A stretch of DNA of 64,000 nt, taken from NCBI GenBank assembly GCA_964270895.1, contig OZ185435.1, one strand, 5' to 3'. Of the stretch, positions 301-60,968 are shown piece after piece. A program made the translations under genes and the position numbers. The DNA comes from Podarcis filfolensis (taxonomy: Eukaryota). The notes under the pieces were generated by a model. That model made no database searches. It saw nothing but the letters and a program-made list of their open reading frames with translations, and was not told the origin of the DNA. The number at the start of each line of letters is the position of its first letter. Position 1 is the stretch's first letter.

Positions 301-2439
301 TATTCTAGAATACAACTTTTAATGCAGCAGCAGGGAATCTCTGGCCCTACAAATGTTGTTGGACTCCCAATTCCCATTCCCTTTAGTCACATCGTCAAAG
401 GCCAAGGATGATGGGATTTGGACTCCAGCACCATAAAGGAGGACTACAGATTCCTCACTTCTGGTTTAGCAAGCCTGTGTCCACAAAGTAAAATGCAATC
501 ACACACACATCCCTTCATCCAGACAAGCAACAGACATTATCTCAGTTCAAGCACTAGAGGTGGGTGAAGATGTGGCCTGAGGAGGGTCCCAAGGGTTGTA
601 AAGAGTAGCCTGGCTGCATTCTTCTGCTGGCCCTGAGGTTCTCCACTCCTACTCTATGGGATCCTTGGAAGAAAAGGGGACTGCTAATGTGCTCTTCTGG
701 AAAGCAAGTTAAAATCATGCAAGTAAAGTAAACCACCTTGAGCACAAATGTATCTGTGGGAAAAGCATACATACATTCATAAACTGATTATGACCATGCC
801 TTCTATCATTCATACGTATAGTACATTTTTATGTATATTAAAAGAGCCTAGCAACTCAGGTGTGTTCAGATTAGCTAACAAGGATGAGGACACTTGCCAG
901 CCTCAAATGCTCTTCCTTATTGCCTTAGGGTTATTAAAATTGAGTAAAATAAATTGAAGGGGATATTTCCATGGTCTTTGATTTTTCAGTCATAAGTAAA
1001 GTATAGGCAATTAATTCTATAGAATAGTGATAAAATATATAGTGTAATTAAAAAATACCATCATTTGTTATGCACATTAATCAGGTGACATTTGGGCTAG
1101 AAAAACTCTGAAGGCTAGATTTTATGTATAGGGTATAAAATGCCTTTCTTCAGAGGCTGCTTTGATATTTAAGCCCTATTTGTACATTTTAATACACTTT
1201 GGCTTTGGGACACAGATTCACTCTTTTAATTAAACAGACTACTATAATTCCTATGGAAATTAGCCTTTTAAAAATAATTCAGCCACCAAAGCATTACTCT
1301 CAGACTTTCTGGATACAAAGTACACTATTTGGATTTTATATCTGCCTGAGATGTAATTAAAAACTCATTTGATTACTATATATTTTGGCTCTCTTTTACT
1401 TATTAAATCCTTGTAATCAATTTTCTTTTATGAAGCTTCTGGGAAATTATCTCAAAAGCAACACATTTCTCTTCCCTCCCTACAGATTCCTTGAACATTT
1501 ACTAAATAACTTTCTTAGCACCTGTCCGTATCTGAATCAATCCGCCAATTTATTCCTGAGCTGCTCAGATCTTTTGGCTTCAGTACAACTGAGACTCTGT
1601 ACCTTCAGCTCTTTGTTCTATGTATCGTGTGCCATTTTGTTGAATGCCAGTTGCTTAGTGCTGGCTTTGTGCAGACTGTTTCTCTCTTAATTCATTCCCT
1701 TAAGGATTCTGATAGTTCAAAGTTGTTACCCAACTCCTACTCTAACAAAAATGTGACAAGTTTGAGTTTGGCTTGGTCTCCAAAATCTAACCGTTGCTGG
1801 ATGATACTGGAGAAGTAAAGTCATACTGAGGATCTTTTACGCAGACAGTGAACAACTACCATTGGAAAATAAATATTTTTCCTGACTGCAGCCGGTAATC
1901 AACACATGTAAATATCAGGGCAAGTCATTACAGGTAATGCAGTTTTTGTACAAAAGGGTGTATGGAAGAGAAAACTGGGGAATTTCATTGTAATATTCAT
2001 ACTTTATATTTGGTTGGTAGTTCATTAAAAAAATTCACAGGTGAAACTTCCTTTGATATTATGAATGGTTATAGCTCTTCAATAAAATGGAACCATTGTG
2101 GGCTGAATGCATTTAAAAGCCGTCTGGATGTCTATTGGGTATGGACTCGTGGACAAATGTGAAGCATGAACTGGGGACATGATACAGTCATGCAGTCTTT
2201 AGGGTCGTGAATCAGAAACGTATTTGGGAAGCTACTTTTGGAAGGAGGATCCTGAGGAAGCTAATACAGCCCAAGGTTCATGAGAACCTCATTCCTGGGC
2301 CATCTCAGGAAGCATAAGGCGACAAAAATGGTATGGTGAATCAGGCCAAAGCTGCACCTGGTCCACCATTCTGATCCTAAGGTATATGCTTCTGGAGAGC
2401 CCACAAGCAGGGCAAGGAGTCAACAGTGCTCCCAGGAAC

Positions 2440-2605
2440 CTGTGTCAGCTCACAGGTTCATCTAGCTTAGTACTGTCTTCATACAGTGACAGGGAGTGGC
2501 TTACCAGAGTTTCAGACAGCAGCTTTCCCAGCCCTACCTGTAGAATCCGGGGATTTAAATGGGAACCTTTTACATACAAATCATGTGCTCTACCACTGAG
2601 CTATT
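2440..2605 (-). mobile_element. Old tRNA-derived SINE
   Basis: Minus strand atagctcagtggtagagcacatg...aaaggttccc...gggctgggaaag...ctgtctgaaactctgg. Confidence 0.7.
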
Positions 2606-2654
2606 AAGTACTTCCTCATTGTTGTTCCCTGGCAACAGGGATTCAGAAGCAGAA

Positions 2655-2735
2655 CTATCTTGGCTGCTGATAGACATATCCTTCATGCATTTGTCTAATT
2701 CCCTTTTAATGCCATCCCATTGGTGGCCATTACTA
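2655..2735 (-). mobile_element. CR1 extreme 3' fragment
   Basis: Minus translation NGHQWDGIKRELDKCMKDMSI resembles the CR1 terminus DGFKRGLDKFMEDRSI. Confidence 0.55.
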
Positions 2736-2940
2736 CACATTGTCAAGCCAATTCCACAAATCAGGCGCATAAAGTAGTACTTTATTTTGATTGGAGCCTA
2801 CTGCCAGTCAATTTCTGCCTTATGTATAAATTAATACCTCTGGTTCTCAAAACCATACACGTTCTTATATTTGCAGTGTTCATTTCCAAAGTATTTTACA
2901 AAGCCCCGTGCTTGCCCTTGCAATTCTGTGAAGTGGGTCA

Positions 2941-3013
2941 CAATAAAATAAAATAATAAAATAATAAAATAATATAAAATATAAAATATAAAATATAAAA
3001 TATAAAATATATT
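2941..3013. repeat. AT-rich simple repeat grading AATAA > AATAATAA > AATATAA
   Basis: Direct reading. Confidence 0.9.
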
Positions 3014-3399
3014 CCAGGGCAGTATTACTTTTAATACGCAGATGGGGGCTGTGACTGAGAGACAGTGATTTTCTCTAGGTTGTCATCCCTGACAAAGATG
3101 GGACTTGAACATAATTCTCGTGGGTCCAAGCTGTTAACTTGGTCAGGGAATTATTTGGGCTTTCACATTTCTCCTTCCCTGAGGGGAGGCAGTGGCCACT
3201 GGGAGATCTGTCATTTGTATCAAAAGCAACATTTAGAATCATAGGTCAAATACACACCATGGATGGAATTCAGCATTGCGCTAGTACGAACATTGTGTCT
3301 GTGTAAGCATTGCAGCTTGCCAGATAGAACAATTCCCCTTTCCTCTCTCACCCGTGTGCTGTTCTGGGGGGTTCTTCTTTAAAGCCATTTACTTGCACT

Positions 3400-3640
3400 C
3401 CTGCCAACCTAGCAGTTCGAAAGCACTTCAAAGTGCAAGTAGATAAATAGGTATCGCTCCGGCGGGAAGGTAAACGGCGTTTCCGTGCGCTGCTCTGGTT
3501 TGCCAGAAGCGGCTTAGTCATGCTGGCCACAGGACCCGGAAGCTGTATGCCGGCTCCCTCGGCCAATAAAGCGAGATGAGCGCTGCAACCCCAGAGTCGG
3601 TCACGACTGGACCTAATGGTTAGGGGTCCCTTTACCTTTA
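3400..3640 (+). mobile_element. Sauria SINE, 5'-truncated
   Basis: Same body as 1-300. Tail tttacctttt. Probable TSD tttacttg(c/t)actcc on both sides. Confidence 0.9.
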
Positions 3641-3679
3641 CTTGTACTCCCTGCCCACTTCAGAAAACTCAGAGCTAGA

Positions 3680-4300
3680 GCATCCCTAATAGATGTCTGA
3701 CCAGCCTCTGCTTGAAAATGTCCAATGAGAGACAGGCCAATACCACCTAAACAACTGGTTCCATTTCTGAACTGCTCTTACTGTGAAACAGTTTTTCCTG
3801 GTGCTCAACCAAAATATTCCCTCCTGCAACTTAAGCCCATCTAGTCCTACCTTCTTCTGAGGCAGCAGAGGGGAAATCTGTGTGCATTGTACTTTTAAAG
3901 CACAGCACATGACTCCCCCTCAAATAATCCTGGGAATTGTAGCTTACACCTCACAAGAGTTCCTATTCCCAACATCTTTTAACAAAATAGAACCCTTAAG
4001 ATTCTTTGAGGGGAAATCATATGCTGTAAATGAGCTTGTTTCCCCCCGTTCTAAGTAGCAAGCCCTTCGGATATTTGAATGTTATCACGTTCCTTCTCAG
4101 TCTTCTCTAGGATAAGTACACCCTTCAATCTGTCATCATAGAACTTGTTTACAAAACTTCTGACCATCTTCATTGGCCTCCTCTAGATCCCATTCCAATT
4201 TGTCTGTATAAATGTATAGCACTCAGAACTGGACACAGTATTCCAGATGAGATCTTACTAATGCAGAATGAAGTATTACACCCTGCAATTTAAGAGCTAT
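3680..4300 (-). mobile_element. Old CR1 3' fragment interrupted by a small MITE
   Basis: Minus translation GLKLQEGIFWLSTRKNCFTVRAVQKWNQL. Decayed EYCVQF-type sequence at about 4200-4260. Confidence 0.75.
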
Positions 4301-4454
4301 TTTACCCAACAATGTTAGACACCTGTAACTTAAGAGCTTTATAAATCAAGCATCTCTCCTTGCCCCCTAAAACCAGTTCCAAACTGGTTCAGAGAACAGT
4401 GTGTCACCCAGTGAATTACAAGCAGAACTTTCTGCTGTAATGTAGATTTTTCTT

Positions 4455-4520
4455 CAGGGCTCCCATCCAAATATTGACCAGTTCTGACTCGCCTGTTTAA
4501 TTCATGAGCTTTGACAAGAT
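4455..4520 (-). mobile_element. 5S rRNA-derived SINE relic
   Basis: Minus strand aaacaggcgagtcagaactggtcaatatttggatgggagccc aligns by eye to 5S aagcagggtcgggcctggttagtacttggatgggagacc. Confidence 0.4.
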
Positions 4521-4914
4521 AACAGCACACAGTCGTCTTTCTGCAGATCTAACACTTGTAAAGTGTGTATGTGCAATAAGAACATATAAATTCACTTTTA
4601 TTACTGAGCAGAATATCAGAAAGCTACAAGCCACCACAGTCACACTGCTCAGTAACCCACTGGGTTCTAATTAATCATTTTTACTGAGGCAATTGAAAGA
4701 GATCCTGGTGACTAGAGGAACTCGAAGGGGACAAAAGGTGTGAGCATGTGAAACTCCTGCAGAGGTTAATAGAGTCAAAACTGGACTGCAGCATGTGTTT
4801 TGCTGACTAGGTTATTCTACAGAATATATGGGGAATCATTTCACCTCCTAAGGACCCTGGAACTTTCTCAGTTCAGATAAATTATGATCTTTTTTTAAGG
4901 GCCACTATAAGGAT

Positions 4915-5265
4915 GGATGCGGGTGGCGCTGTGGGTAAAACCTCAGGACTTGCCGATCGCATGGTCAGTGGTTCGAATCCCCGTGGCGGGGTGCGCTCCC
5001 GTCGTTCGGTCCCAGCGCCTGCCAACCTAGCAGTTCGAAAGCACCCCCAGGTGCAAGTAGATAAATAGGGACCGCTTACCAGCGGGAAGGTAAACGGCGT
5101 TTCCGTGTGCTGCGCTGGCTCACCAGATGCAGCTTGTCACGCTGGCCACGTGACCCGGAAGTGTCTTCGGACGGCGCCGGCTCCCGGCCTCTAGAGTGAG
5201 ATGAGCGCACAACCCTAGAGTCTGTCAAGACTGGCCCGTACGGGCAGGAGTACCTTTACCTTTAC
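4915..5265 (+). mobile_element. Full-length Sauria SINE of a divergent subfamily
   Basis: tRNA-like head ggatgcgggtggcgctgtgg...ggttcgaatc, (ACCTTT)n tail, TSD TAAGGAT at 4908-4914 and 5266-5272. Confidence 0.9.
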
Positions 5266-5344
5266 TAAGGATGGAAGTAAGTTACAAGAAACCTGGGGCT
5301 GCCACCCAAAAACGTAAGTTCTGTGTCCCCTCTTGCTCTGTAGC

Positions 5345-5381
<37 letters not shown>

Positions 5382-5583
5382 GTATGTATGTATGTAGTAC
5401 AAAAGAAGGTTGGAGACTCCTCAAAACCAAAAATGAGCAAGTGCTCCTCTATCACTATGAAAAAGAGAAAAAAGCAACCTGGTTACCTATAATGGTTATG
5501 GGAATGAGATCCAAAAATGTGCCAGAATTAAAGCAAGCAAATTTCCTCTTGCTAAAAGTTAAATCACTGAGGAGCACAGAGAT

Positions 5584-5834
5584 GGGAGCCAGCGTGGTGT
5601 AGTGGTTAAGAGCGGTAGTCTCGTAATCTGGGGAACCGGGTTCGCGTCTCCGCTCCTCCACATGCAGCTGCTGGGTGACCTTGGGCCAGTCACACTTCTT
5701 TGAAGTCTCTCAGCCCCACTCACCCCACAGAGTGTTTGTTGTGGGGGAGGAAGGGAAAGGAGATTGTTAGCCGCTTTGGGACTCCTGAAGGGGAGTGAAA
5801 GGCGGGATATCAAATCCAAACTCCTCTTCTTCTT
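5584..5834 (+). mobile_element. tRNA-head squamate SINE (Squam-type) with (CTT)n tail
   Basis: A-box tggtgtagtgg, B-box-like gggttcgcgtc, CORE-like gctgggtgaccttgggccagtcac, tail ctcttcttctt. Confidence 0.8.
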
Positions 5835-5859
5835 GTACTGAAATATGTACCCAGGTCAT

Positions 5860-6600
5860 GAGGTGCCATGTTTGTGAGTCAAATATTTTGTTGCTCCATA
5901 ATAACTTCACTAAAATTGAGAACCTGGTCTATAATCTCTTCTGCAAAGAGTGGCTGCTTCAGATTAATGAATAGGCAGCAATCCTTAAGCCATTCTTACG
6001 GAAGTAGCCCTAGCAAAGATAGCCTGAGAATTGTAACCATAGGCTTCCGTTTGCTCCGGCAATTTGCCATATCCAAAGAGAGTTGGGCAAAACACGAGAT
6101 GACTAACCATTTACTTTTGGCATTTCTTCCACACAGCAATCAATACTTGCTGCCTTGCTGTTAAACAGATTTTGAAAATCTCTTCAGTCCCTATCAGTCT
6201 CTTTTCCTTAGTTAGTTCTTTAGATTTACCCTCAGCTGGGAATTTGCCAGCCAGATGTAAGCTGTGATTCCGGTTTGTTCAACACTTACTGCAAGCATTC
6301 AATCCATCATCATTTCTAGCCCTTTTCTGAGGCAATAGAGTTTGCTCTTTGTCTTTCTTGAAAACTGAGTAGCTGTTAAATTATCCATTAATCTTCTTTC
6401 AGATTTGCTGCAAGTTTTGTTTTGTTTTAAAATGGAGGGTTTACTTCATTGGCCATCTTTTCAAACACATTTTCCAGCTGCTCAGTCTGCCTCCTCAGGT
6501 TCTAAATAGGCACCTTTCCCTCTCAGTTCATTTCTACATATCGCTCAGCTAATTGTCACCTCTTACTCCCCTTTTCACTAAATGAAAACATCCAAATTGC
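5860..6600 (-). mobile_element. Possible highly decayed L1 ORF1 remnant
   Basis: Broken minus frames give NLRRQTEQLENVFEK (coiled-coil-like), RLMDNL..RK..LRKGLE and LSLDMANCRSKRKPMVTILR, loosely like L1 ORF1 motifs. Many stops and frameshifts. Confidence 0.3.
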
Positions 6601-6635
6601 TACACCCTTTTGTCAACTTATTATTCCAACCTGTA

Positions 6636-6886
6636 CAGTCGTACCTTGGATCTCAAACGCCTTGGCTCCCGAACAAATCGGCTCCTGAACCATCAAAACC
6701 CGGACGTGAGTGTTCCAGTTTGCGAACGTTCTTTGGAACCCGAACGTCCAACATGGGCTTCTGCGGCTTCCAATTGGCTGCAGGAGCTTCCTGCAGCCAA
6801 TCAGAAGCCACGCTTTGGTTTCCAAACGTTTTGGAAGTTGAACGGACTTCTGGAACGGATTCTGTTCGACTTCCAAGGTACGACTG
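6636..6886. mobile_element. Tc1/mariner (Tigger/pogo-like) MITE
   Basis: TA|CAGTCGTACCTTGGA ... TCCAAGGTACGACTG|TA. Confidence 0.9.
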
Positions 6887-9174
6887 TATTATGCTTCGGA
6901 GCTGAAGTCATTATCCAGCAGTTCCGTCCTGTGCCCCATGCACAATCCATGCAACAATTCCACTCTGCTGAAACAGAAAAGAACATCGACCTTAACGTAA
7001 CAAAACAAATCCATCATGGGGGTCGGGTGGGGTGGGAAACTTTCAAATCCACTGTTCAATTACATACGTCACTGGCAACAAGAGAAACATAACAAACTTT
7101 CTCTTATAACCCTGTTACCCTCTCGGGACATATATGAGGTAGTTCAAACTGTTTGCTTCGATTGGTATTAAAGAAATCTCGAAGTAATCAAGGTTGCCCC
7201 AGATCTGGTCAGGCATGGTTGCCTCTTTTTGGAGCTCCAACCCCTATCTTGGTTGGCGTCACTTCCAGGAGATAGAGAAATATTGACGCCACTGTTCACA
7301 CGTAGTTCCTGGAGATGCATGCATTTTCCAGGCCAGTGGGAACTGCTTATGAAGGTATGTGAAAAGTGGATTATCAAGAGTTCCATTTGTAGTGCTTAAG
7401 CTTTGTATCTTACGACACAGGCATCTTTCACATCCTGTTTGCTAAGGAATGCTGCTCCTCCAGCTTCTTCAGATACTGAACAACTGGCACAAGTGATTGT
7501 GGAGGGCACAGAAGTGCAATCAGCATCCAAAGCAAAATGCATTTGCTGCACTATGTTGCCTACTGCCCGTTTGGTTCACAGCAGTACATTTACCACCCCA
7601 AGCATTTTGCTTTTCATTGAGCATATTGTGAATAAATTAAAGGACTTGTTACAACTGCAGCGTTTCGTTGGCATCACCCAACAGAGTCGTTTAATTACAG
7701 GGTCACACATAATCTATTGCTTAATGATGACAAGCTAGAGAGGACATCAAAACGGTTTTGCTAGCAGCTGAGGCCATTATGCATGCCCTTTTGTTTGTGT
7801 TCCAAGTGTATCGTATTTGATAAAGAATGTTTCCGAGGACTTTCATTTTCCTTCTGTGTTATGATGTACGAAGCACTGAGAAGACATATAGTGACAAATG
7901 CAACCTGACCCTGGAGGGTTGAGATGAAGCAATGTCAATTCCTTTACCCTTTGTACTGCATTCACAGGGATTTAAGAAGGCTCTTTCAAATCCTTGAAAG
8001 GAGCATCCCATCTGGAATTCCAAAAAGAGAACAGAGCACTTACAGAAGCAAAGATGCTCTAGATGTCTCCCACAAAAACACATCCTGCTCGCATTCTTAC
8101 TCAGACAGGGGCAGAGTGCTTGGCCTCTGACCTCTGTATCCTTCCATCTCATGGGGTTGCCGTCTCTGCTTAACAACGCAGAATGGTAATAGGTTGGGAT
8201 TCTTTTTGGCCTCTTTTGTTATCTTCTATTTCTAATAAGAAGACTCCTGTCCCTTGTGTGTGAAGCACTTCGTTATAACTGAATTTTAGAGAAAATCAAA
8301 ACAGCTATAAAGATGCCCCTTTGACTATGTGCAAACAAACAGACTGCTTTGATTTGTGTCGTTTTGGGCCAAACAGGTGCAGTGATGGGGCGACACACTT
8401 GATTTGCTGCAGAGAAGCAGTGGGTTTGGACAAGATGCTTAAATCCTCCTCTTTCTGCTTGCTCCTTTCCCCCTGCAAACCTACCACCACCACTGCAATT
8501 CTTGCCACATTTTGGGTTCAATGTAAGCTTACCTCATCACAGGGACAACTGACTGGGCACAAAGTTGTAGAGGAAAGAAACAGAGAGGAAGGAAGGTTAA
8601 GCTAAGCACCTCTTCCACCCACTTGGCCTCTGCATGCTGTGGCCTTCCCTGTCGCTTTGCAGCTGTTTGGCAATAACCCAGGTTCTTAGACTTGGATTGA
8701 GTGACTGATTTGGCTCTTTCCTTACTGCACTGATCTGGCATCGTCTACCTTCTATCTAGCCAACTTTATGTTCAAGGCAGATCATAAAGACACACAAATA
8801 TCCACATTTTAGACACTCATCGCTTTAAGCATAAAAACAATGCACACATTTCCTCCAAAGTCTTACAAAGCAGGAGCTGATCCTATACAACAGAAAAAAG
8901 CAAAGATTTTTTAGCAAATGAAGGTAACGGCAAGAAAAAACAAGCTGAGAATAAACTAGTTAAGTATAGGGACTATAGTTCCCACATATATTCCATCTGT
9001 GACATTTTGAACTGTAACATAGTGGAGCACATTGAAATTAATGCTTCTCTTCCAGTTGCATGCATTTTCCAGTTCTGTAAGAAAATCCTTGTTACCAAAT
9101 GATAAATTTGAAACCATATTTGTTTGGTAAGTGACGTGCACAAATAGAAGGACTGCTAACTGATGTTATTTCAC

Positions 9175-9420
9175 AAACTGCGAAGAGTTTTGTGGTACCT
9201 TAAAGACTTAACACATTTATTATGGCATAACATTTTATGGACTTGAGTTCAATTCATCAGATGCATGTAGATGGCAGGTATATATCTACATAGGCAGAGG
9301 GGAAAAATGAAAGCAGTGCAAAGGGAAAATAAAATGCAAAAAACCCGAGTGACAACATATGTAAAATAATTACTGCAACAAACTAGCATAGCTAACCCTT
9401 CAAGAAATTATTTCAGTTTT
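9175..9420 (-). mobile_element. Penelope-like element 3' end with decayed hammerhead
   Basis: Plus strand gtggtaccttaaagacttaacacatttattatggcataacattttatggacttgagttcaattcatcagatgc resembles the recalled reptile Penelope terminus. The minus strand has GCAU-CUGAUGA...AAAA...UUAUGC, with GAAA mutated to AAAA. Confidence 0.6.
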
Positions 9421-9453
9421 AGCAGTCTTTGTTTTGTGTAACACAATCTTAAG

Positions 9454-9918
9454 CAGGGGTCAGCAGCCTTTTTTTGGAGGGGGCTGGTTCACACCCCCCC
9501 CAGACCTAGTGGAGGGCCAGACTGCGCACGCGGCAGAGGGGGATTCTCTCTTTCCCCCAGCCCCTCCCCTCCCCCTGCTTACCTCCCTCCACCGCTCTGC
9601 CTGTGGTGGTACCTCTCCTTTTTGGGACAGCTTTCCCGGGTGGGAGGCGCACGGCCAGCAGCTGTGCCAAGCTCCAGCCCACAGCGCGGCCATGAGAAGA
9701 GGCCGGTGAGGACTCCTATCAAAGCCCAATCCCCTTCCTCCGCAGGGCAGGGAGAAGCCAGGAAGAGGGAGGGAGGAGGAAAAAATCGCAAAAAAATGGC
9801 ACCCGAAAAGAAATTGGAAAAAAATGGTGATCGCACCGATTGCAGAACCGTTTGCGGGCCGGATCCAGAGGGCAATTGGGCCTGATCCGGCCTGCAGGCC
9901 TTAGTTTGCCGACCCCTG
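9454..9918. mobile_element. hAT-type MITE
   Basis: TIRs CAGGGGTCAGC / GCCGACCCCTG. Perfect 8-bp TSD ATCTTAAG (9446-9453, 9919-9926). Confidence 0.9.
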
Positions 9919-10909
9919 ATCTTAAGCATAGTTACTAGTCAGAAGTAAGTTCAACTTAATTCAATGGATTTGTTTCCGAGCAAGTGTGCCTAAATCTACT
10001 GCTTTGTCCTAGTCATTTGTTTTTAAAGGACAACACATTCTGAAAGCAGTATGTAGCAGAAATATACCCCAGATTTGTATTTCCGCAAGAAAAAGGGTAC
10101 GAGAAAAGAGAGGCTGGCCATGAACAATGCAGGATTAGGAACAACAACTAATCAAGTAATGTATAAAATAATAAAGTAATGTGTGTAGGTGATCAACTAC
10201 TTTTTAAAAAGAACCATACATCCCTATACCATTGTGCTACTTTACAACACGTAGCTGGAATCATCACATTGTGCATCATCAGTCAAGCAAAATATGCAGG
10301 GATGACATCAGGATTTGAGGTAAGTTTTACAACGGATTACAGAGAGGGAGAACACAACATACAGCTGTTCTCTTAATGGGATGTGCAGACAAACAGACTG
10401 GGATGATTTTGGGGGAGTACAGTGGGGGAAGCCCTGTTCTACTAGCAGCAGCCTTCGCACTGGCTCCCACTTGTGGAACTCCTTAGTTGTATGTGGCTCA
10501 TTGTACTTTGAATGCATGTTTGCTTGTTTTTAATAGTGACTGTGAGCAAGCTTGAGCAGCACCGGGACTGCAGGGGGGGCATGGTTTAACCTGGCCTTCC
10601 CCTATCTTGGGTCCCCATATGTTGTTGAACTACAACTCCCATCATCCCTGCCCATGCATGAGCAGGAATGATGGGAGCTGTAGTCCAACCCCAACCCTTC
10701 CCTTGCTATGGTCCTGATGTAAATCTCCCCTCAAGCTGCTACTTTGAACTAATGGCAGCACCAATGGGAGCTTCCTTTCTGATGCAAATAGAAGCTAGAG
10801 AAGTTGTTCACCAGGACCATGGCAGCAGGAAAATAATTAAACTCTCCCGGTCTACCTTCTGTAGTCCCTATGGTGCTCAGGTTTCCCCACAGCTGCTAGT
10901 AACATTTTT

Positions 10910-10911
<2 letters not shown>

Positions 10912-10950
<39 letters not shown>
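10912..10950. repeat. (AC)n microsatellite
   Basis: Direct reading. Confidence 0.95.
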
Positions 10951-10954
<4 letters not shown>

Positions 10955-11530
10955 CTATCATAATATTTTGTGTGTGGCCTTACTACATTTGTTGTAATAT
11001 GTGGTGTCACTAATATGTCAAAGATGAGGCATAATAGATAATAAGCACTCTAGAAAATGAGGAAGGAATGGCGCCAGAAAACAGAACAGCAGAGAAAGCT
11101 GTTCTCTGACAGTAAATGCCTTTATACTGTCAGCAGGCACGTACGTATCCAAGCATTTAGCTGCAAATGGCAGAGAGGGAGGAAAAGAAAGAAGGAGCCC
11201 AGATTTTGCACAAGCACAACATGCTATGCTACTGTATCTATTACATTCTGTGTTTAGACAAGTTATTGCCATTAAAAGAAGGATTTGTGTGGAGGAGGGA
11301 AGAATCCCAGAACTGGAGATGTCTAGATCATGATGTCCTAACTTAGGCTTCTTAACCATGCATAAATGGGATTTACAGTGCCTCTATGCATCATTGATGC
11401 AATGGCTGCCCTGGAAATTAAGACTCAGCTTTATATTCCAGGGAGCATCTCACTCAGTGTGAGACTGTGACATCTAGTTCTCTGTTTACCCCTAAGGCTG
11501 GTATGGCATTAACTTCAAGTTCTGACAATG

Positions 11531-11614
11531 GAAAGAAAGAAAGGGGGGGGAGAGAGAGAGAGAGAGAGAAGGAAGAGAGAAGAGGAGAGAGAGAAGGCAG
11601 GAAGGAAAGAAGGA

Positions 11615-11666
<52 letters not shown>

Positions 11667-11669
11667 AAA
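11531..11669. repeat. Polypurine tract (GA)n/(GAAA)n
   Basis: Direct reading. Confidence 0.95.
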
Positions 11670-12177
11670 GCTGAGCAACAGCTTAATAGTTGTGCAGCAT
11701 TAATCAAAGGCCATGGGGGAAGAGAGTTAGGAATTCAGTTGTGCCTCTGTTGCCCAGATAACTCCTGCAAGTTTGGAGCTAAGTGATGCTCTTAGTGTTC
11801 CTATTCAGCCCTCTCACACAACCCTCCTGAGATGCTTTTCTTGCCGTCCTGCTTACAAATTCTGGCTCTTCAGTTCTTCTGGTTTAATAGACAATGGTTT
11901 TCTTAAATGACCAGTTCCTAAATTCCCCCCCTCCTAACTTCTTCCTGAATTTATCTAAAATGTGACATCCATTTTAAACAATATGTTTATTACAACTTCA
12001 TTCAGTGCCTAATTGTATTTTGATCTGAAGCTACCAATTATAACTGTATTAAACTTATAAGGACGAGCCATACGTTATAAAGCCAAGTCAGCTGAACATC
12101 AAGTCAACAGGGTGCAGTGAGGGTCTGCATGGGGAACGTCTCAATAGTGAAGGAATTCCATAGGAACCACTGAAAAA

Positions 12178-12180
<3 letters not shown>

Positions 12181-12251
<71 letters not shown>

Positions 12252-12252
12252 T
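12181..12252. repeat. Compound (CT)n(GT)n microsatellite
   Basis: Direct reading. Confidence 0.95.
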
Positions 12253-12369
12253 CTGCCATCCACACCAAACATGTCCGAGAGTCACATTATGCATATAAAT
12301 GGGTGCCTGCAGTGGGGGCTTTGTGTTTCCTGCTTTAAACAGCAGCTCTTCTGTGATGCATTTGAGAAC

Positions 12370-12744
12370 CAGGGCCTTCTTAAGCATATCCGGCACCATG
12401 GTGCAAAGCTCCCTCCGGCACCCCCCCCTCCGGTTTCCCAGAGTTTTTTTAGGGAGTACGGCGCTGCCGGCGGGTCTGGAGGAAGCAGACAGCAGCTGGA
12501 GGACAGCTCCTCCGGTGGGGAAGAGGCGGAGGCTGGATGTGGCGCCTCCCGGCTCAGCTGGCCACTTCGTGCCGCGGTGGCCACGGCAGACGGAGGCTCC
12601 GGGTGCGGTGCTGCTTCGGTGCGGCATGGCAGCAAGCTGATGCCAGGAGGCGCCGCGTCCAGCCTCCGCCTCTTCTCTGGCGCCCTCCAGAACTTGGCGC
12701 CCTGGTGCCTTGTGCCACTAGCCTCTATGGATAAGACGCCCCTG
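12370..12744. mobile_element. hAT-type MITE (GC-rich)
   Basis: Ends CAGGGCCTTCTTA / TAAGACGCCCCTG. Perfect 8-bp TSD TTGAGAAC (12362-12369, 12745-12752). Confidence 0.88.
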
Positions 12745-13338
12745 TTGAGAACTGTCTGAGATAGTCACCAAGTTTCAGCAGCAACTCTCTAATTCTGAAC
12801 AAACGAAGTACCCAAACCCTGAAACCTTTGGACTAGAGCTAAAACAAAAGGTCTTTAAAGCATTGAATGTGCAGACGAGGGAGACTGGGGTGGGTGGGTG
12901 GGTTACTTGGCGTGAGCGTAGCCGGGGTGTGTGCAGGTGAGGGCAGCTGCCTCCCCTAAATCAAGTAAATAAATAAAAATACTTAACTAATTGACCAATT
13001 GCCTCACAGATAACTTAGTTCTGCCCCACCCAACATAATGCTGCCCCCCCCACCAATAAATCCTGGCTACACCCATGTTACTTGGCTATTTTATTTCTCT
13101 TCCTTATTGACAGAGGATAGAGATTTGGGCCTCATAGGCACACATTTATTTTACTACATTAGAAATGCTCCGGCTTCTTTTCCTGCCCTGTGGAATGAGC
13201 GAGCCCAGGACAGACCTCATGAAGATCGAAAGATTGACACCTCCTGCAAAGCTGTTACATAACATCTCCCTTCTCCCTTCTGCAGAGAGGCAGGGCCAGC
13301 CAGCCTCCCACCTCTGCAGCAGCGGTATGTAAAATTAC

Positions 13339-13422
13339 CTGATAGAGAGGCGTGCAGATGCTATCAATCCACTCCAGCTGCAATCGAGGCAGTTCATCTT
13401 TCCTGTTCCGATCAAAAATAGC
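13339..13422 (-). CDS. PDE11A: PDE11A coding exon (about exon 19), AIFDRNRKDELPRLQLEWIDSICTPLYQ
   Basis: 84 nt, phase 0/0. Acceptor attcag|GCT, donor CAG|gtaatt. The invariant Gln is followed by Trp (QLEW); PDE5 has QVGF here, so this supports PDE11. Confidence 0.97.
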
Positions 13423-49051: not shown

Positions 49052-50720
49052 TAGTGACATTCCAACAAAATCATTTTAAGGCCTAATTCATACAACCACT
49101 TGCAACTGCACAGGGACTTCTAGTGAACTTCAGGCAACCATTTCATGACAGGGATGTGTGCGTAATCCATTTTTATGAATGGGGTCATCATGCAACCTAC
49201 AAAGGTGGGAGAAGGGTTGTTGCATAGCAAGCCATTCACAATGACAGATTCCCCATGACTCTCTGCCAATGGGGGGTAGTGCCTTGTTGTAGAGAAGAAA
49301 AGGTCATGTGAATTTTCTCTAAGAGTTGACACATAAGTAGTGCAGGCTGAGAAGTGGGAAACAGTTGTGTGGGAAATAGCTCGCATTTGGCAGTGTTTTG
49401 AAAATTAGCTGTGCAGATATTCACAGATCCACAGCCAACAGATAGACGTTTTAACCCTATCAAAGCAAAACAACAACAACAACAAAGACCCGACCCTTTC
49501 CAAACAATTGCAATTCCATATGAACCTGCTGTTTGGTAGTTATTCAATCCAGATGAAAAGAAGCTGTTTCATCAAACGATAAAACATGCTGTCATACCTC
49601 ACCAGCTCCAGAAAGAAACCTAAAACAATTCTGGCCTTTGAGCTCCACCTAGCGGAAGCCTTGCATTAAGGTCTGTATTGTTATGAGCAAAAGCGGCAGC
49701 ACAAATGTGAAAGCTTTCATCAGAATAGTTATCAAGCAGGTTTTGATTTTTATGTAGCATTTTAGCAACGAAATATAAAAATGAAAACCTTCAAATAATT
49801 TATCTAGGTTGTCAAACATGATGATGGATCAGCTTAAAGTGCATAGATGAGCAGACTGGGGGCACAATGCCATGATTTAAGTGCAAATGTACATGTGTGT
49901 GTTTTATTAAATGTGGATGTCTAAGGGGAAGTGGGGAATTGACAGCTGGGAAGGCCCATCAACTCCAAACTTATTCAGTGAGTGAGGCCTCATATTGCCA
50001 AGGTGTCCCTGCTGGCAATTTGTCTACATTAAAAAAAAGAAAAAAACTGAAGGTATGTGATCAGCACCTTGCATAAATGTGATGTGGAAGTAATAATTCT
50101 CGGTGTCTTGGTTAAATTTTCTTATGCCTTCCCCAAAGCCAAAGAAAATTGTTCGCCTGTCTTCATGAAGCTGGTTGTAAACACCTGCCACCGCTAACGA
50201 ATTCTGGCAGCCTAGAATAAAATGTTAAAATAGCATACACCCTTGTCCTCCCATTACATCCTTGAACCCCTGAACCTAGCAGCTTTTCTTAACCAGTTCA
50301 ACCCAGGTTTCCCTCCTTCGTCACCTCTTTCCTTCACCTGAAATGTCCAGTTTACCTGTATCCTTTAACTGTTTCCCCACCACCATAATATAAGGCTCCT
50401 GTTGGCAGCTGCAGCTTTACCAGTTAAAGATTCCAGTTTTGGATAAACTGGAATGCTCACTTTACTATTCCCACTGAAGTTTCTTTGCCAGCTGTCTGGT
50501 CCTTCCTTACAATCTCTCACCATGTACTTGATTAGCAGCTCAGTGCTCTTTGGGGGGTTAAAGTGCGCAAATCTTCAGTCCCATTTAAATTCATGCATTT
50601 TAAATTCTATGGTTACATGCCCAAGTCCTACTTTCCTCAATGGGAGCAACACACTGAACTTTCTCTGGATTACAGGCACATTGGCAGAGTGGGGATTTTA
50701 TGAAGCAATGACTTCTAGGG

Positions 50721-50723
<3 letters not shown>

Positions 50724-50773
<50 letters not shown>
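50724..50773. repeat. (AT)n microsatellite
   Basis: Direct reading. Confidence 0.95.
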
Positions 50774-50776
<3 letters not shown>

Positions 50777-51046
50777 CCATTCTTTTAAGATGAGGTTCTA
50801 TAACAATAAGGTCACTATCATACAACTGCCATCTGTGGTTCCATTCTTTCACAGTGCTCAAACCCTGTCAAATGTTGCCAAATAAGCGCTGCCAAATTAG
50901 GTATCAAATTAGGACCCTTTATTCTCTTGGGCGCTTACGTCTCAATATTTTTTTTTTAATGCCGTATTAGCAAGGGGAAGAGGAAACAAATGTTTGGACA
51001 ACATTGTGGATAGTATCATAAGATGCCTGCCACTCAAGATACTCAC

Positions 51047-51264: not shown

Positions 51265-51411
51265 CTCATAGTCAATTTTAAATTTCTGCACCATTCCAAG
51301 CTCCATGAACATCCGGAGGGCTGCAGTTATCATGGCGTCCGTGTCGAGGGAGAAGTCGTCAAAATGGATGTTGTCTATGCCAAGCTCTGACACAAGTGGA
51401 ATGTTTGCTGC
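51265..51411 (-). CDS. PDE11A: PDE11A coding exon (about human exon 11), [49 protein letters not shown]
   Basis: 147 nt, phase 0/0. Acceptor ttccag|GCA, donor GAG|gtaacc. Translation closely matches the recalled human PDE11A catalytic-domain start ([23 protein letters not shown]). Confidence 0.97.
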
Positions 51412-51980
51412 CTGGAATTACCCAAAGACAATGAGAAAACTTCTCACGCGCAGCTCAGGCTCTTTCTAGCCGCACTTCCTTAGAACAAATGTTTCCCAAA
51501 TCCATTTAGACAACCTAGAAATGGCAATTGCAAAATGTACGGTGGAAATCTGGGAAGGGAGAGAAAACTACAAACTGGAAGTGCAATCCCACTAGTATCA
51601 AAACTGCAACAAGATCCATTCTGTTAAATCTGGGATGGGAAACCTGTGGTCCTCTAGATGTTGTTGCATTCCGTCTTGCAGCATGGCCAATGCTGAGGGA
51701 TGGCAGGTGTTTTAGTCTAGCAACCCCTGGAGGGCCACAGGTTCTCCATGACTTAAATGGAGACTGCCTAGAAACTTCACTGAAATAGCATTTGGAGAAA
51801 TGGCTGTGTATGTATATGACCTATGTATGCTCAGCAGAATAAATATGTCCTGCTTCACAGGTTATGTTTTATGAATGCTGCTCCACCCCCAACAAAAGGT
51901 ACGTGTAAAGTAGTCCTGAGCTAGCATTTGAAGAGCTGTCAGCTCTACAGCAGCTGCAATGGATTTGCATTACAAGACAA

Positions 51981-52656
51981 ACTTGAAAAAACACGTAAAC
52001 GTAATAGGTTGTATAACAAGAATAGTAAAGTTGACCACCAAGTCTAGTATGTACAAAATGCGATTTCTTTCTAATTTCTTCATCTTCTCTTGTATTTTTC
52101 TATCTGATGTATTCCTTAGAAGAGTACCATGAAACAGTCTTGTAAGTGTCTAATGAAGATGATAAGGTTGGTAGACATAAGAAACTGGCACTGGTAGATG
52201 CTGGCACAGGTAGACAGGACAAGGATTCCTGGATATTCCCCTGTTTCGCCCCAAGGGGCTTCATCAGCTGTGTGTAGTTCGGTACTGTATATAACAGCTA
52301 CATGGATCCTATTTGTGATAGATTCTTAGTCAAATAAGGTCTACCAATCTTATCATCTTCAGTAGACACTTGCAAGACTATTTCATCTTACTCTTCTAAG
52401 GAATACATCAGATAGAAAAATACAAGAGAAAATGAAGAAATTAGAAATTAATGTACTATGGGACTGACAAAAAAGAATCGCATTTTGTAGATACTGGACT
52501 TGGTGGTCAACTGAATCAGCTGCATTTTAATATGTTATGTCACGATGTTGATTTTGACATTATGAGAAGCTGTATCTAATTTTGAGAAGTTGTTTCCAGT
52601 AAATAACTTTACAATTGTTATTATACAGCCTATTATGTTTACGTGTTTTTTCAAGT
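51981..52656 (-). mobile_element. Penelope-like retroelement remnant with inverted arms around a hammerhead
   Basis: Left arm 51981-52176 is the reverse complement of right arm 52339-52656, which has two extra internal segments. The spacer holds the hammerhead. Inverted 5'-truncated segments plus a hammerhead are known Penelope-like element traits. Confidence 0.7.
52214..52271 (-). ncRNA. Type I hammerhead ribozyme motif (Penelope-associated)
   Basis: Minus-strand RNA: ACAG-CUGAUGA-A-GCCCCUUGGGGC-GAAA-CAGGGG(AAUAUCCAGGAA)UCCUUGUC^CUGU. Stem I is ACAG/CUGU, stem II GCCC/GGGC, stem III 7 bp (with two G-U pairs). GUC triplet with predicted cleavage between 52218 and 52217. Confidence 0.8.
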
Positions 52657-53981
52657 GGATTTGCGTAATATAGGCATTCTAGTGGTTTTGATTACGAGAC
52701 AAAGTGGCAATTCTAAACCTTGGGAGTTAAGTGGTGAAGGGGAATTTCAGAGTCTTTAAAATGCTCGTCTTTCCAAAGCTGCATCAAACACACCCTTGGC
52801 AAATCCGCACATGAAGATATTTGGGTATTGCACTGGCATGGGTTGTATGAAACTCCATGTGACTGCAGTGCAGTTTTGAAAGTTACATATCAGGGCTGGC
52901 AACAGATTCAAAAGTTAAAAACCAGCACGTGCCATCGCTTTCACAGCTGGCTGGAAGTGCTTGCTTGTCATATCTGTGAGGGCAACCACCCAGGAAGGTT
53001 GAATAATCTGTAGATGGGAATGTGGTCTGTGCAACTTTCCTGGACAAGTGCTGGCAACTGACTTCCAAGCATACAGGGCAGGTAACTGGCAGTGATTGTT
53101 TGTCCTGTCCAGAGCTACTCTGAGGTAACGAGTGTGGTAAAAAAAAATGGTAATAAAATGATCATATCGGAAGTATGAATTTTCTTGGTGCTGTAGCTTG
53201 AATAAACTATCAGGATTTTTCAGGTGGATAAATAACAATATATAACCATTTGATCATAAACTGATGAACAAAACAAGTAAAAGACTTTTTTTTTAATGAC
53301 AAGCTTTCTATTTATGAGGTTTTACCACCCTATGTTTAAAAAGAAGTACCATAGTCCAAAATAATCACTGAATTAATAGCCAAGAGGTAACATTTGTATA
53401 AAATAACCATTTGCTTTACAGCAGCAGTAAAAGGAATGGCAGAATTATGTACGAAGGTTAGAAAGTAATTTGAATAATGCAGAAAAGGAGAAATATTATA
53501 TGCGTACAACATCTATTGTCATTCTACATTTGAGGTGAAGCACTGCAAGTTTATAAAAAAGAAAATCATAGAAATTACAGCACGTGGGTTGGGGTGGGGA
53601 AAGTAAATTAATATATGTTATTTAAAAATGCATACTTAAAGTCCCAGCTACTCAAAAAGGCTTTTAGCTCTCAGATCTTGCATACTAACAAAACAATTGT
53701 CATTGTGACAGGTAGGAGGGATGGAGAGAGGATCCATATTTTGAAGGACCCCTGGGAAGGGTTGCAATACATCTCTGTGTGCTCTGTGCGCAGACACACA
53801 TTGGACACAATCCAGTAATGGTTAATCACAGTCAAATGCCACAGAAAGCAAAGGAAACAGACTTGGGGCTGAATGAAACATGATGCAGGGGGGCAGATTC
53901 CTGGATTTTATACATATGCATAAATCTTTGTGCGTGTGTGTACGCTGCCTTTTCTTGCAAGAACCTCACCACTTGCTAATA

Positions 53982-60861: not shown

Positions 60862-60968
60862 AGCTAGAAGCTCGGTTGGTAGAGCACGAGACTCTTAATT
60901 TCAGGACTGTGGGTTCGAGTCCCATGTTGGGTGAAAGATTCCTGCATTGCAGGGGGTTGAATAGATAA
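60862..60968 (+). mobile_element. tRNA-Lys(CUU)-derived short SINE or pseudogene with CR1-like 3' tail
   Basis: gctcggttggtagagcacgagactCTTaatttcagg...gggttcgagtcccatgttgggtg resembles tRNA-Lys-CTT, with anticodon at 60894-60896 and mismatched stems. It is followed by aaagattcctgcattgcagggggttg. Confidence 0.7.

Follow-up and report, generated by a model that had tools for sequence, protein, structure and literature searches.

The question raised by this locus is whether a hammerhead ribozyme lying in an intron of a phosphodiesterase (PDE) gene of Podarcis filfolensis works for its host gene, survives as the relic of a mobile element, or is no ribozyme at all. We analyzed the whole 64,000-nucleotide stretch of contig OZ185435.1 (hereafter the window) and prefer, with a probability of roughly 0.6, the reading that the motif is the type I hammerhead of a Penelope-type retroelement relic that landed in the intron in the sense orientation. 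The motif comprises 58 nt of the minus strand (52271 down to 52214) and has exactly the letters given in the initial annotation; its parts are listed in Table 1. The generic core is complete (C3 U4 G5 A6 N7 G8 A9, G12 A13 A14, A15.1-U16.1, H17), the cleavage triplet is GUC, and three helices of 4, 4 and 7 bp, of which helix I is open, leave this core, with the extra A placed between A9 and G10.1. The earlier description of a complete type I hammerhead, having both core boxes, a GUC triplet, a 4-bp stem I and a 7-bp stem III, proved to be exact on the minus strand, and the cut that it had predicted between 52218 and 52217 agrees with our reading of the motif. Inspection of the sequence shows that tertiary contacts between helices I and II are absent, the 4-bp helix I being open and devoid of a loop 1, and that a longer helix I would require a 6-nt bulge. 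Within the window this motif is the only match to the type I descriptor and also the only unit made of the core, helix II and GAAA. Judged by its letters, the motif is supported as a type I hammerhead, complete in form, that lies in a PDE intron on the sense strand.

Table 1. Coordinates of the hammerhead motif, of the insertion that contains it and of the neighbouring host exon.
Feature	Position in window	Strand	Composition or remark	Basis
Host phosphodiesterase exon	51265..51411	-		acceptor AG 51413-51412, donor GT 51264-51263
Left target-site duplication	51969..51980	.	ATTACAAGACAA; 13 nt with the following A	
Sense copy of repeat family	51981..52338	-	gene's sense orientation	arm alignment, multi-copy depth
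Type I hammerhead motif	52214..52271	-		sequence reading, descriptor search; Rfam scores sub-threshold
Helix I	52271-52268 with 52217-52214	-	4 bp, ACAG / CUGU	sequence reading
Core	52267-52261	-	CUGAUGA	sequence reading
Unpaired extra A after CUGAUGA	52260	-	A	sequence reading
Helix II	52259-52248	-	GCCC-CUUG-GGGC, 4 bp, CUUG loop	sequence reading
GAA	52247-52245	-	GAA	sequence reading
Helix III	52244-52219	-	ACAGGGG / UCCUUGU, 7 bp, two G-U pairs, 12-nt loop	
C17	52218	-	predicted cut 52218/52217	
Inverted copy, 5'-truncated, of the sense copy's 3'-terminal region	52339..52656	+		arm alignment
34-nt terminal extension (tail)	52657..52690	+		paralogue contig ends, target-site duplication boundary
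Right target-site duplication	52691..52702	.	ATTACGAGACAA	

The exons of the host gene were examined one by one. The translation of the exon 51411-51265 resembles the PDE6-type catalytic domains present in the PDB and the exon that follows it matches Pfam PDEase_I; judging from these two exons, the gene is of the PDE5/6/11 type. Since the host exons lie on the minus strand, the motif is on the gene's sense strand, and its distance to the acceptor at 51411 is 806 nt, so that the position proposed originally, in the sense strand of a PDE gene about 800 nt before this acceptor, is retained. Between the hammerhead insertion and the exon, residues 51608-51769 form a repeat of very high copy number (summed contig depth of 1400-13400 in four related species vs. 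15-31 in the flanks), whose contigs show many differing loose ends (51632, 51666, 51709-51714, 51748-51749). Inside it two segments (51635-51663 / 51721-51749) form an imperfect inverted repeat, and the whole resembles a short element of SINE or MITE type. Two other regions, 10621-10695 and 50709-50795, are perfect or near-perfect palindromic hairpins to which several microRNA-precursor models match equally on both strands, with scores far below the Rfam threshold (e.g. mir-5408, 47 bits vs. 90, and mir-1277, 37 bits vs. 81). The second of them is intronic and located just downstream of the PDEase_I exon, and both are probably MITE or simple-repeat hairpins. Finally, a tRNA-like match at 60869-60925 (plus strand; 35.3 bits for a gathering score of 29, model positions 9-63 only) is probably the head of a tRNA-derived SINE and not a tRNA gene.

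The surprise value of the hammerhead motif hinges on the descriptor chosen. When a loose descriptor is used (CUGANGA, 0-1 inserted base, helices of at least 4, 4 and 7 bp, G-U pairs allowed), chance alone should give 5e-4 matches per window, or about 12 in a genome of 1.5 Gb, and the per-window figure, once scaled, corresponds to about a hundred expected matches over 250,000 windows. Such numbers speak for an explanation that we consider unlikely on the whole, namely that the motif is a chance look-alike of a hammerhead within an ordinary non-catalytic repeat (a foldback element, a MITE or another retroelement) and was never a ribozyme. On the other hand, the classical consensus (CUGAUGA, G10.1-C11.1, GAAAC...GUC, helix I of at least 4 bp, helix III of at least 3 to at least 7 bp) is expected by chance only 2e-7 to 8e-6 times per window, and it is the simultaneous presence of U7, G10.1-C11.1, C15.2-G16.2 and GUC that brings the expectation down to 0.004-0.2 per 1.5-Gb genome and argues against coincidence.

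With Infernal, the Rfam models were run at the gathering score, on 700 nt with E<=10, on 86 nt and on the full window. From the window down to the 86-nt stretch, no hammerhead model reached its gathering score over the motif. The best hit, Hammerhead_3, obtained 22.2 bits where 48.5 are needed (E = 3.7 for the whole window); its alignment has the type III topology, with an upstream GUA, a helix I hairpin and C3 deleted. The 86-nt stretch alone gave a truncated Hammerhead_3 of 16.2 bits as the sole clan hit reported. For Hammerhead_1, HH9 and HH10 no overlapping match was reported at the motif, it being understood that clan competition shows the best overlapping hit only and may thereby mask a type I match of lower score. 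The covariance-model search, proposed with the initial annotation as a means of verification, yielded in this way nothing but a sub-threshold Hammerhead_3 alignment of another topology. A type III reading with the GUA at 52301-52299 was also considered, and rejected because it needs either the deletion of C3 or a 1.1-2.1 mismatch. An E-value of 3.7 at a score far under the gathering threshold, together with the silence of the type I models, is what a chance look-alike would give. We retain for that explanation the low probability stated above, rather than none, because no covariance model supports the motif.

A 12-13-bp target-site duplication, ATTAC[A/G]AGACAA(A), whose left and right copies are identical at 11 of 12 positions, directly abuts both ends of an insertion of 710 bp that contains the motif, and for this reason the span of the insertion is set at 51981-52690. 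It is made of two head-to-head copies of one repeat family. The sense copy, which holds the motif, is 5'-truncated at or before 52338 and terminates at its 3' end (51981) without a tail; paralogue contigs cover its residues 52073-52280. Its 3' part, 52176-51981, is one arm of an inverted repeat from which a 92-nt and an approximately 26-nt segment are missing. The other arm, 52339-52656, is the fuller version and ends short of the hammerhead position. The arms are 80-92% alike, and the motif falls within the 162-nt centre that separates them. A 34-nt tail is found at just one of the insertion's ends. Paralogue contigs align up to 52688-52693, whereas the contigs of the single-copy flank start at 52649-52664; because the former stop at 52688-52693, the tail is attributed to the multi-copy family. 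No other copy of the insertion repeat occurs elsewhere in the 64-kb window, and no exact matches were found in metagenome contigs or in viral contigs. A 9-mer, TGGATTTGC, is present twice, at 51960-51968 just outside the left target-site duplication and at 52656-52664 across the junction between arm end and tail; it is followed by ATTAC in the left flank and by the reverse complement GTAAT in the tail. This pair might point to tail-like sequence being a preferred target, a preference reported for the Penelope endonuclease, or to a microhomology used in priming. Its interpretation as an 8-9-nt duplication of the hAT type was rejected, the 12-13-bp repeat that encloses the tail being the better boundary.

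Four related species, whose single-copy flanks are about 2.7-3% diverged, supplied Logan DNA contigs that were aligned on 51500-53100. Over 52040-52690 the summed contig depth is 450-2700 as compared with 15-31 in the flanks, a quantity that is not a copy number and that we read solely as some tens of diverged copies; most of the contigs in this region are less than 95% alike. The depth climbs in the 5' to 3' direction of the repeat unit, from 50-83 at 52310-52363 to 236-451 at 52256-52309, 465-992 over the motif and approximately 1000-2700 at the outer end, and climbs likewise toward 52656, which is the pattern expected of 5'-truncated retroelement copies. In paralogue contigs, the sense copy is joined to inverted ends that are unequal in length (52272 to 52656, 52266 to 52649, 52247 to 52629). 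In these three joints, the point at which the sense copy is 5'-truncated covaries with how long the inverted piece is, with a sum constant within 2 nt (skips of 381, 382 and 383 nt) and filler letters that differ; among 34 joints this could be a coincidence. One paralogue has C3 and the 5' strand of helix I replaced (joint 52266 to 52649, with TTCATTCA in between), and others are deprived of the cleavage-site side of the motif (joints 52100 to 52225 and 52159 to 52242). The best-supported differences listed in the contig alignment include no position of 52214-52271, window-specific ones being listed at 52282, 52431, 52591 and 52597; this absence of high-fraction variants among the listed differences suggests that the motif letters of the window may be those of the family majority.

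Several classes of mobile elements can be compared with this structure. MITEs are characterized by constant terminal inverted repeats and by a short target-site duplication of fixed length; a DNA-transposon MITE was rejected in view of the 12-13-bp duplication, of the one-sided 34-nt tail and of inverted junctions that vary among paralogues. The twin priming of L1-type elements inverts a more 5' segment and not the same 3' terminus, and was rejected as both arms correspond to the same 3'-terminal region. The known hallmarks of insertions by Penelope-like elements (PLEs) comprise an adjacent inverted copy that is 5'-truncated, a tail of 30-40 bp that is often one-sided, and a hammerhead in the pLTR (PMC8557442). 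The present insertion displays the inverted truncated copy, the 34-nt tail on one side, the variable-length target-site duplication, the 5'-truncation and, on the sense strand of its longer copy, the hammerhead motif. That the host repeat bears these hallmarks of precisely the class known for hammerheads weighs against a chance look-alike. We infer a PLE origin for the repeat family and a source element in which the motif would have cut the element transcripts after the GUC. The connection with Penelope-like retroelements drawn in the initial annotation is reinforced by the insertion structure as well as by the short helix I and the unpaired base.

The enzyme of the Anolis Poseidon element (PAc) cleaves and extends both DNA strands, and its reverse transcription begins at two internal sites 30-40 nt apart (PMC11167929). 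Because of this behaviour, the inverted copies and the tail find an explanation: a PLE enzyme would have primed reverse transcription on both cleaved DNA strands, giving two inverted 3'-terminal copies, one of them tailed, and the longer copy would have been inserted in the gene's sense orientation, reaching far enough in the 5' direction to include the hammerhead. The cleanly bounded insertion, with its target-site duplication, its one-sided tail and its inverted 3'-terminal copy, may illustrate the two-strand priming proposed for PLEs. Neither reverse transcriptase nor GIY-YIG coding sequence is present in the 51981-52690 copy. The alignment of the arms reveals that they are full of stop codons, some common to both, and the hypothesis that they encode a PLE N-terminus was rejected on account of these shared stops. 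An ORF of 54 codons (52100-52264, minus strand) starts at the AUG inside CUGAUGA, runs into the arm and ends at a stop codon common to both arms; its product has no Pfam domain and no word-sharing relatives. The ORF of the Anolis Poseidon element likewise starts within the hammerhead, at the beginning of helix II (PMC11167929). The repeat family may be a non-autonomous derivative.

The motif was also examined by folding calculations. The hammerhead fold has a free energy of -11.9 kcal/mol and the minimum free energy (MFE) structure -17.4 kcal/mol, a gap of 5.5 kcal/mol; the competing fold is a CCCUUG/CAGGGG hairpin that disrupts helices II and III. At equilibrium about 2e-4 of the molecules are predicted to adopt the hammerhead fold, and against shuffled sequences the motif has a z-score of -0.23. 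The gap and the z-score are in line with a look-alike that was never catalytic. However, the same calculation places the PAc hammerhead in its own fold 5.8 kcal/mol above its MFE, and we consequently dropped the thermodynamic gap as an argument against activity, since a hammerhead proven to be active has a similar one and the objection does not discriminate. Indeed, the PAc hammerhead is active in vitro; C3G and G8C abolish its cleavage and the double mutant partly restores it (PMC11167929). It consists of a helix I CCU/AGG, a core CUGAGGA followed by a bulged U, a helix II of 6 bp and GAAAC-GUC (PMC11167929). In the metazoan PLE hammerheads in general, helix I spans 4-5 bp and helix II has an unpaired base at its 5' end (PMC4209133). 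The short stem I, the extra A and the missing tertiary contact against which the initial annotation had cautioned are all there; the first two, being common to PLE hammerheads and to the active PAc one, are nevertheless better regarded as family traits than as defects. The occurrence of exactly these traits is a further point against coincidence. Given the open 4-bp helix I, the lack of loop-loop contacts and the stronger competing hairpin, activity is predicted to be weak: the intron copy would be transcribed within the PDE pre-mRNA, where its self-cleavage is predicted to be probably poor or nil, as for a weak or dead transposon ribozyme, and its effect on the PDE transcript would probably be little.

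This bears directly on the proposal that the motif is a domesticated intronic ribozyme, maintained by selection, that cleaves the PDE pre-mRNA co-transcriptionally and tunes splicing or transcript level. Type I intronic hammerheads domesticated in amniotes do exist (PMC6155905), and here the motif is in the sense orientation 806 nt upstream of an acceptor, and is formally intact despite 8-20% divergence of the arms since insertion. Moreover, in each of the four related species single-copy contigs that span the junctions show the orthologous site to carry the insertion. Yet retention between species about 3% apart is expected by descent, and the orthologous contigs cover only residues 52237-52271 of the motif, where the absence of listed differences has no power at 3% divergence. 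As to intactness, a neutral motif of 58 nt has an estimated chance of about 0.2 of escaping a disruptive hit, which is not significant, and therefore intactness is no evidence of selection. Against a host function also stand the membership of the motif in a multi-copy family inserted with a target-site duplication, the absence of HH9 and HH10 matches among the best overlapping clan hits of Infernal, and the lack of those tertiary contacts without which cleavage in vivo is not efficient (PMC4209133). We thus regard domestication as highly improbable, its positive evidence being limited to the sense orientation and to retention between very close species; a self-cleaving RNA that regulates the phosphodiesterase transcript, as envisaged in the initial annotation, is not supported, given the multi-copy repeat, the missing HH9/HH10 match and the competing hairpin.

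Comparison with the known hammerheads allows the motif to be situated among them. It shares with the amniote intronic hammerheads of RECK, CTCL and DTNB (HH9/HH10; PMC6155905) the type I topology and the location on the sense strand of an intron in a protein-coding gene. Whereas those are single-copy, deeply conserved and have kept their tertiary contacts (PMC6155905), the present motif belongs to a copy of a repeat family, matches neither of the two models and is so far recorded only from species that differ by about 3%. A second group consists of the hammerheads of non-LTR retrozymes and of satellite- or SINE-like repeats, which are also of type I, retroelement-borne and equipped with a 4-bp helix II (PMC7229834; bioRxiv 10.64898/2026.07.22.740005). 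Canonical metazoan type I hammerheads occur as dispersed monomers, often intronic, in most of the reptiles sampled (PMC7229834; bioRxiv 10.64898/2026.07.22.740005). Retrozyme hammerheads differ from our motif in a 6-bp helix I, in contacts between loops 1 and 2, in a helix III of 1-2 bp and in their tandem arrangement; the window contains one motif and no direct repeat of the unit, and no type I Rfam hit was reported in it.

The fungal and protist PLE hammerheads resemble the motif in being of type I, with a long helix III and no recognizable tertiary contacts between helices I and II. Large helices III are known among them, and the hammerhead of Serpula lacrymans cleaves as a monomer (PMC4209133). 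The likeness is one of layout. These ribozymes differ in coming from endonuclease-deficient telomeric PLEs of non-animals. By combining PLE-type features with a long helix III, the motif could be a natural relative of the dimer-dependent PLE hammerheads that is competent as a monomer. When helix III of a minimal PLE hammerhead is lengthened artificially, cleavage takes place mainly at non-physiological Mg2+ (PMC4209133). Pushed to its limit, this idea would have a vertebrate Penelope-lineage hammerhead with a full 7-bp helix III that cleaves as a monomer, and a sense copy retained in lacertids that cuts the PDE pre-mRNA about 800 nt before the acceptor and lowers or reshapes its output; we hold this to be very unlikely.

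The metazoan PLE hammerheads have a long helix II (6-8 bp) and a helix III that is absent or reduced to a palindrome of 1-2 bp, and they act as dimers (PMC4209133). The motif departs from them by its helix III of 7 bp with a 12-nt loop, where PAc has ACGU, and by its 4-bp helix II with a CUUG loop. Helix III is hence atypical of animal retroelement hammerheads (PMC4209133), a feature that favours a chance look-alike. With respect to PAc, 22 extra nucleotides are found between GAAAC and GUC, forming the 7-bp helix III, and the distance from the cut site to the 3' end is about 240 nt in the motif copy and about 360 nt in the fuller arm vs. about 90 nt; no sequence similarity of the insertion to PAc was found. 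What the motif has in common with the metazoan PLE group is the type I hammerhead with an open helix I of only 3-5 bp, one nucleotide left unpaired between A9 and helix II, and GAAAC...GUC, carried on the sense strand of a 3'-terminal, pLTR-type repeat next to which stand an inverted, 5'-truncated partner and a tail on one side. Metazoan PLE hammerheads are widespread as single relics, reptiles included (PMC4209133, PMC11167929). If the Penelope-type origin preferred here is true, the motif would be an ordinary case, one more relic among the many hammerheads that retroelements have left in reptile introns, and a caution against taking every intact-looking intronic hammerhead as a regulator of its host gene.
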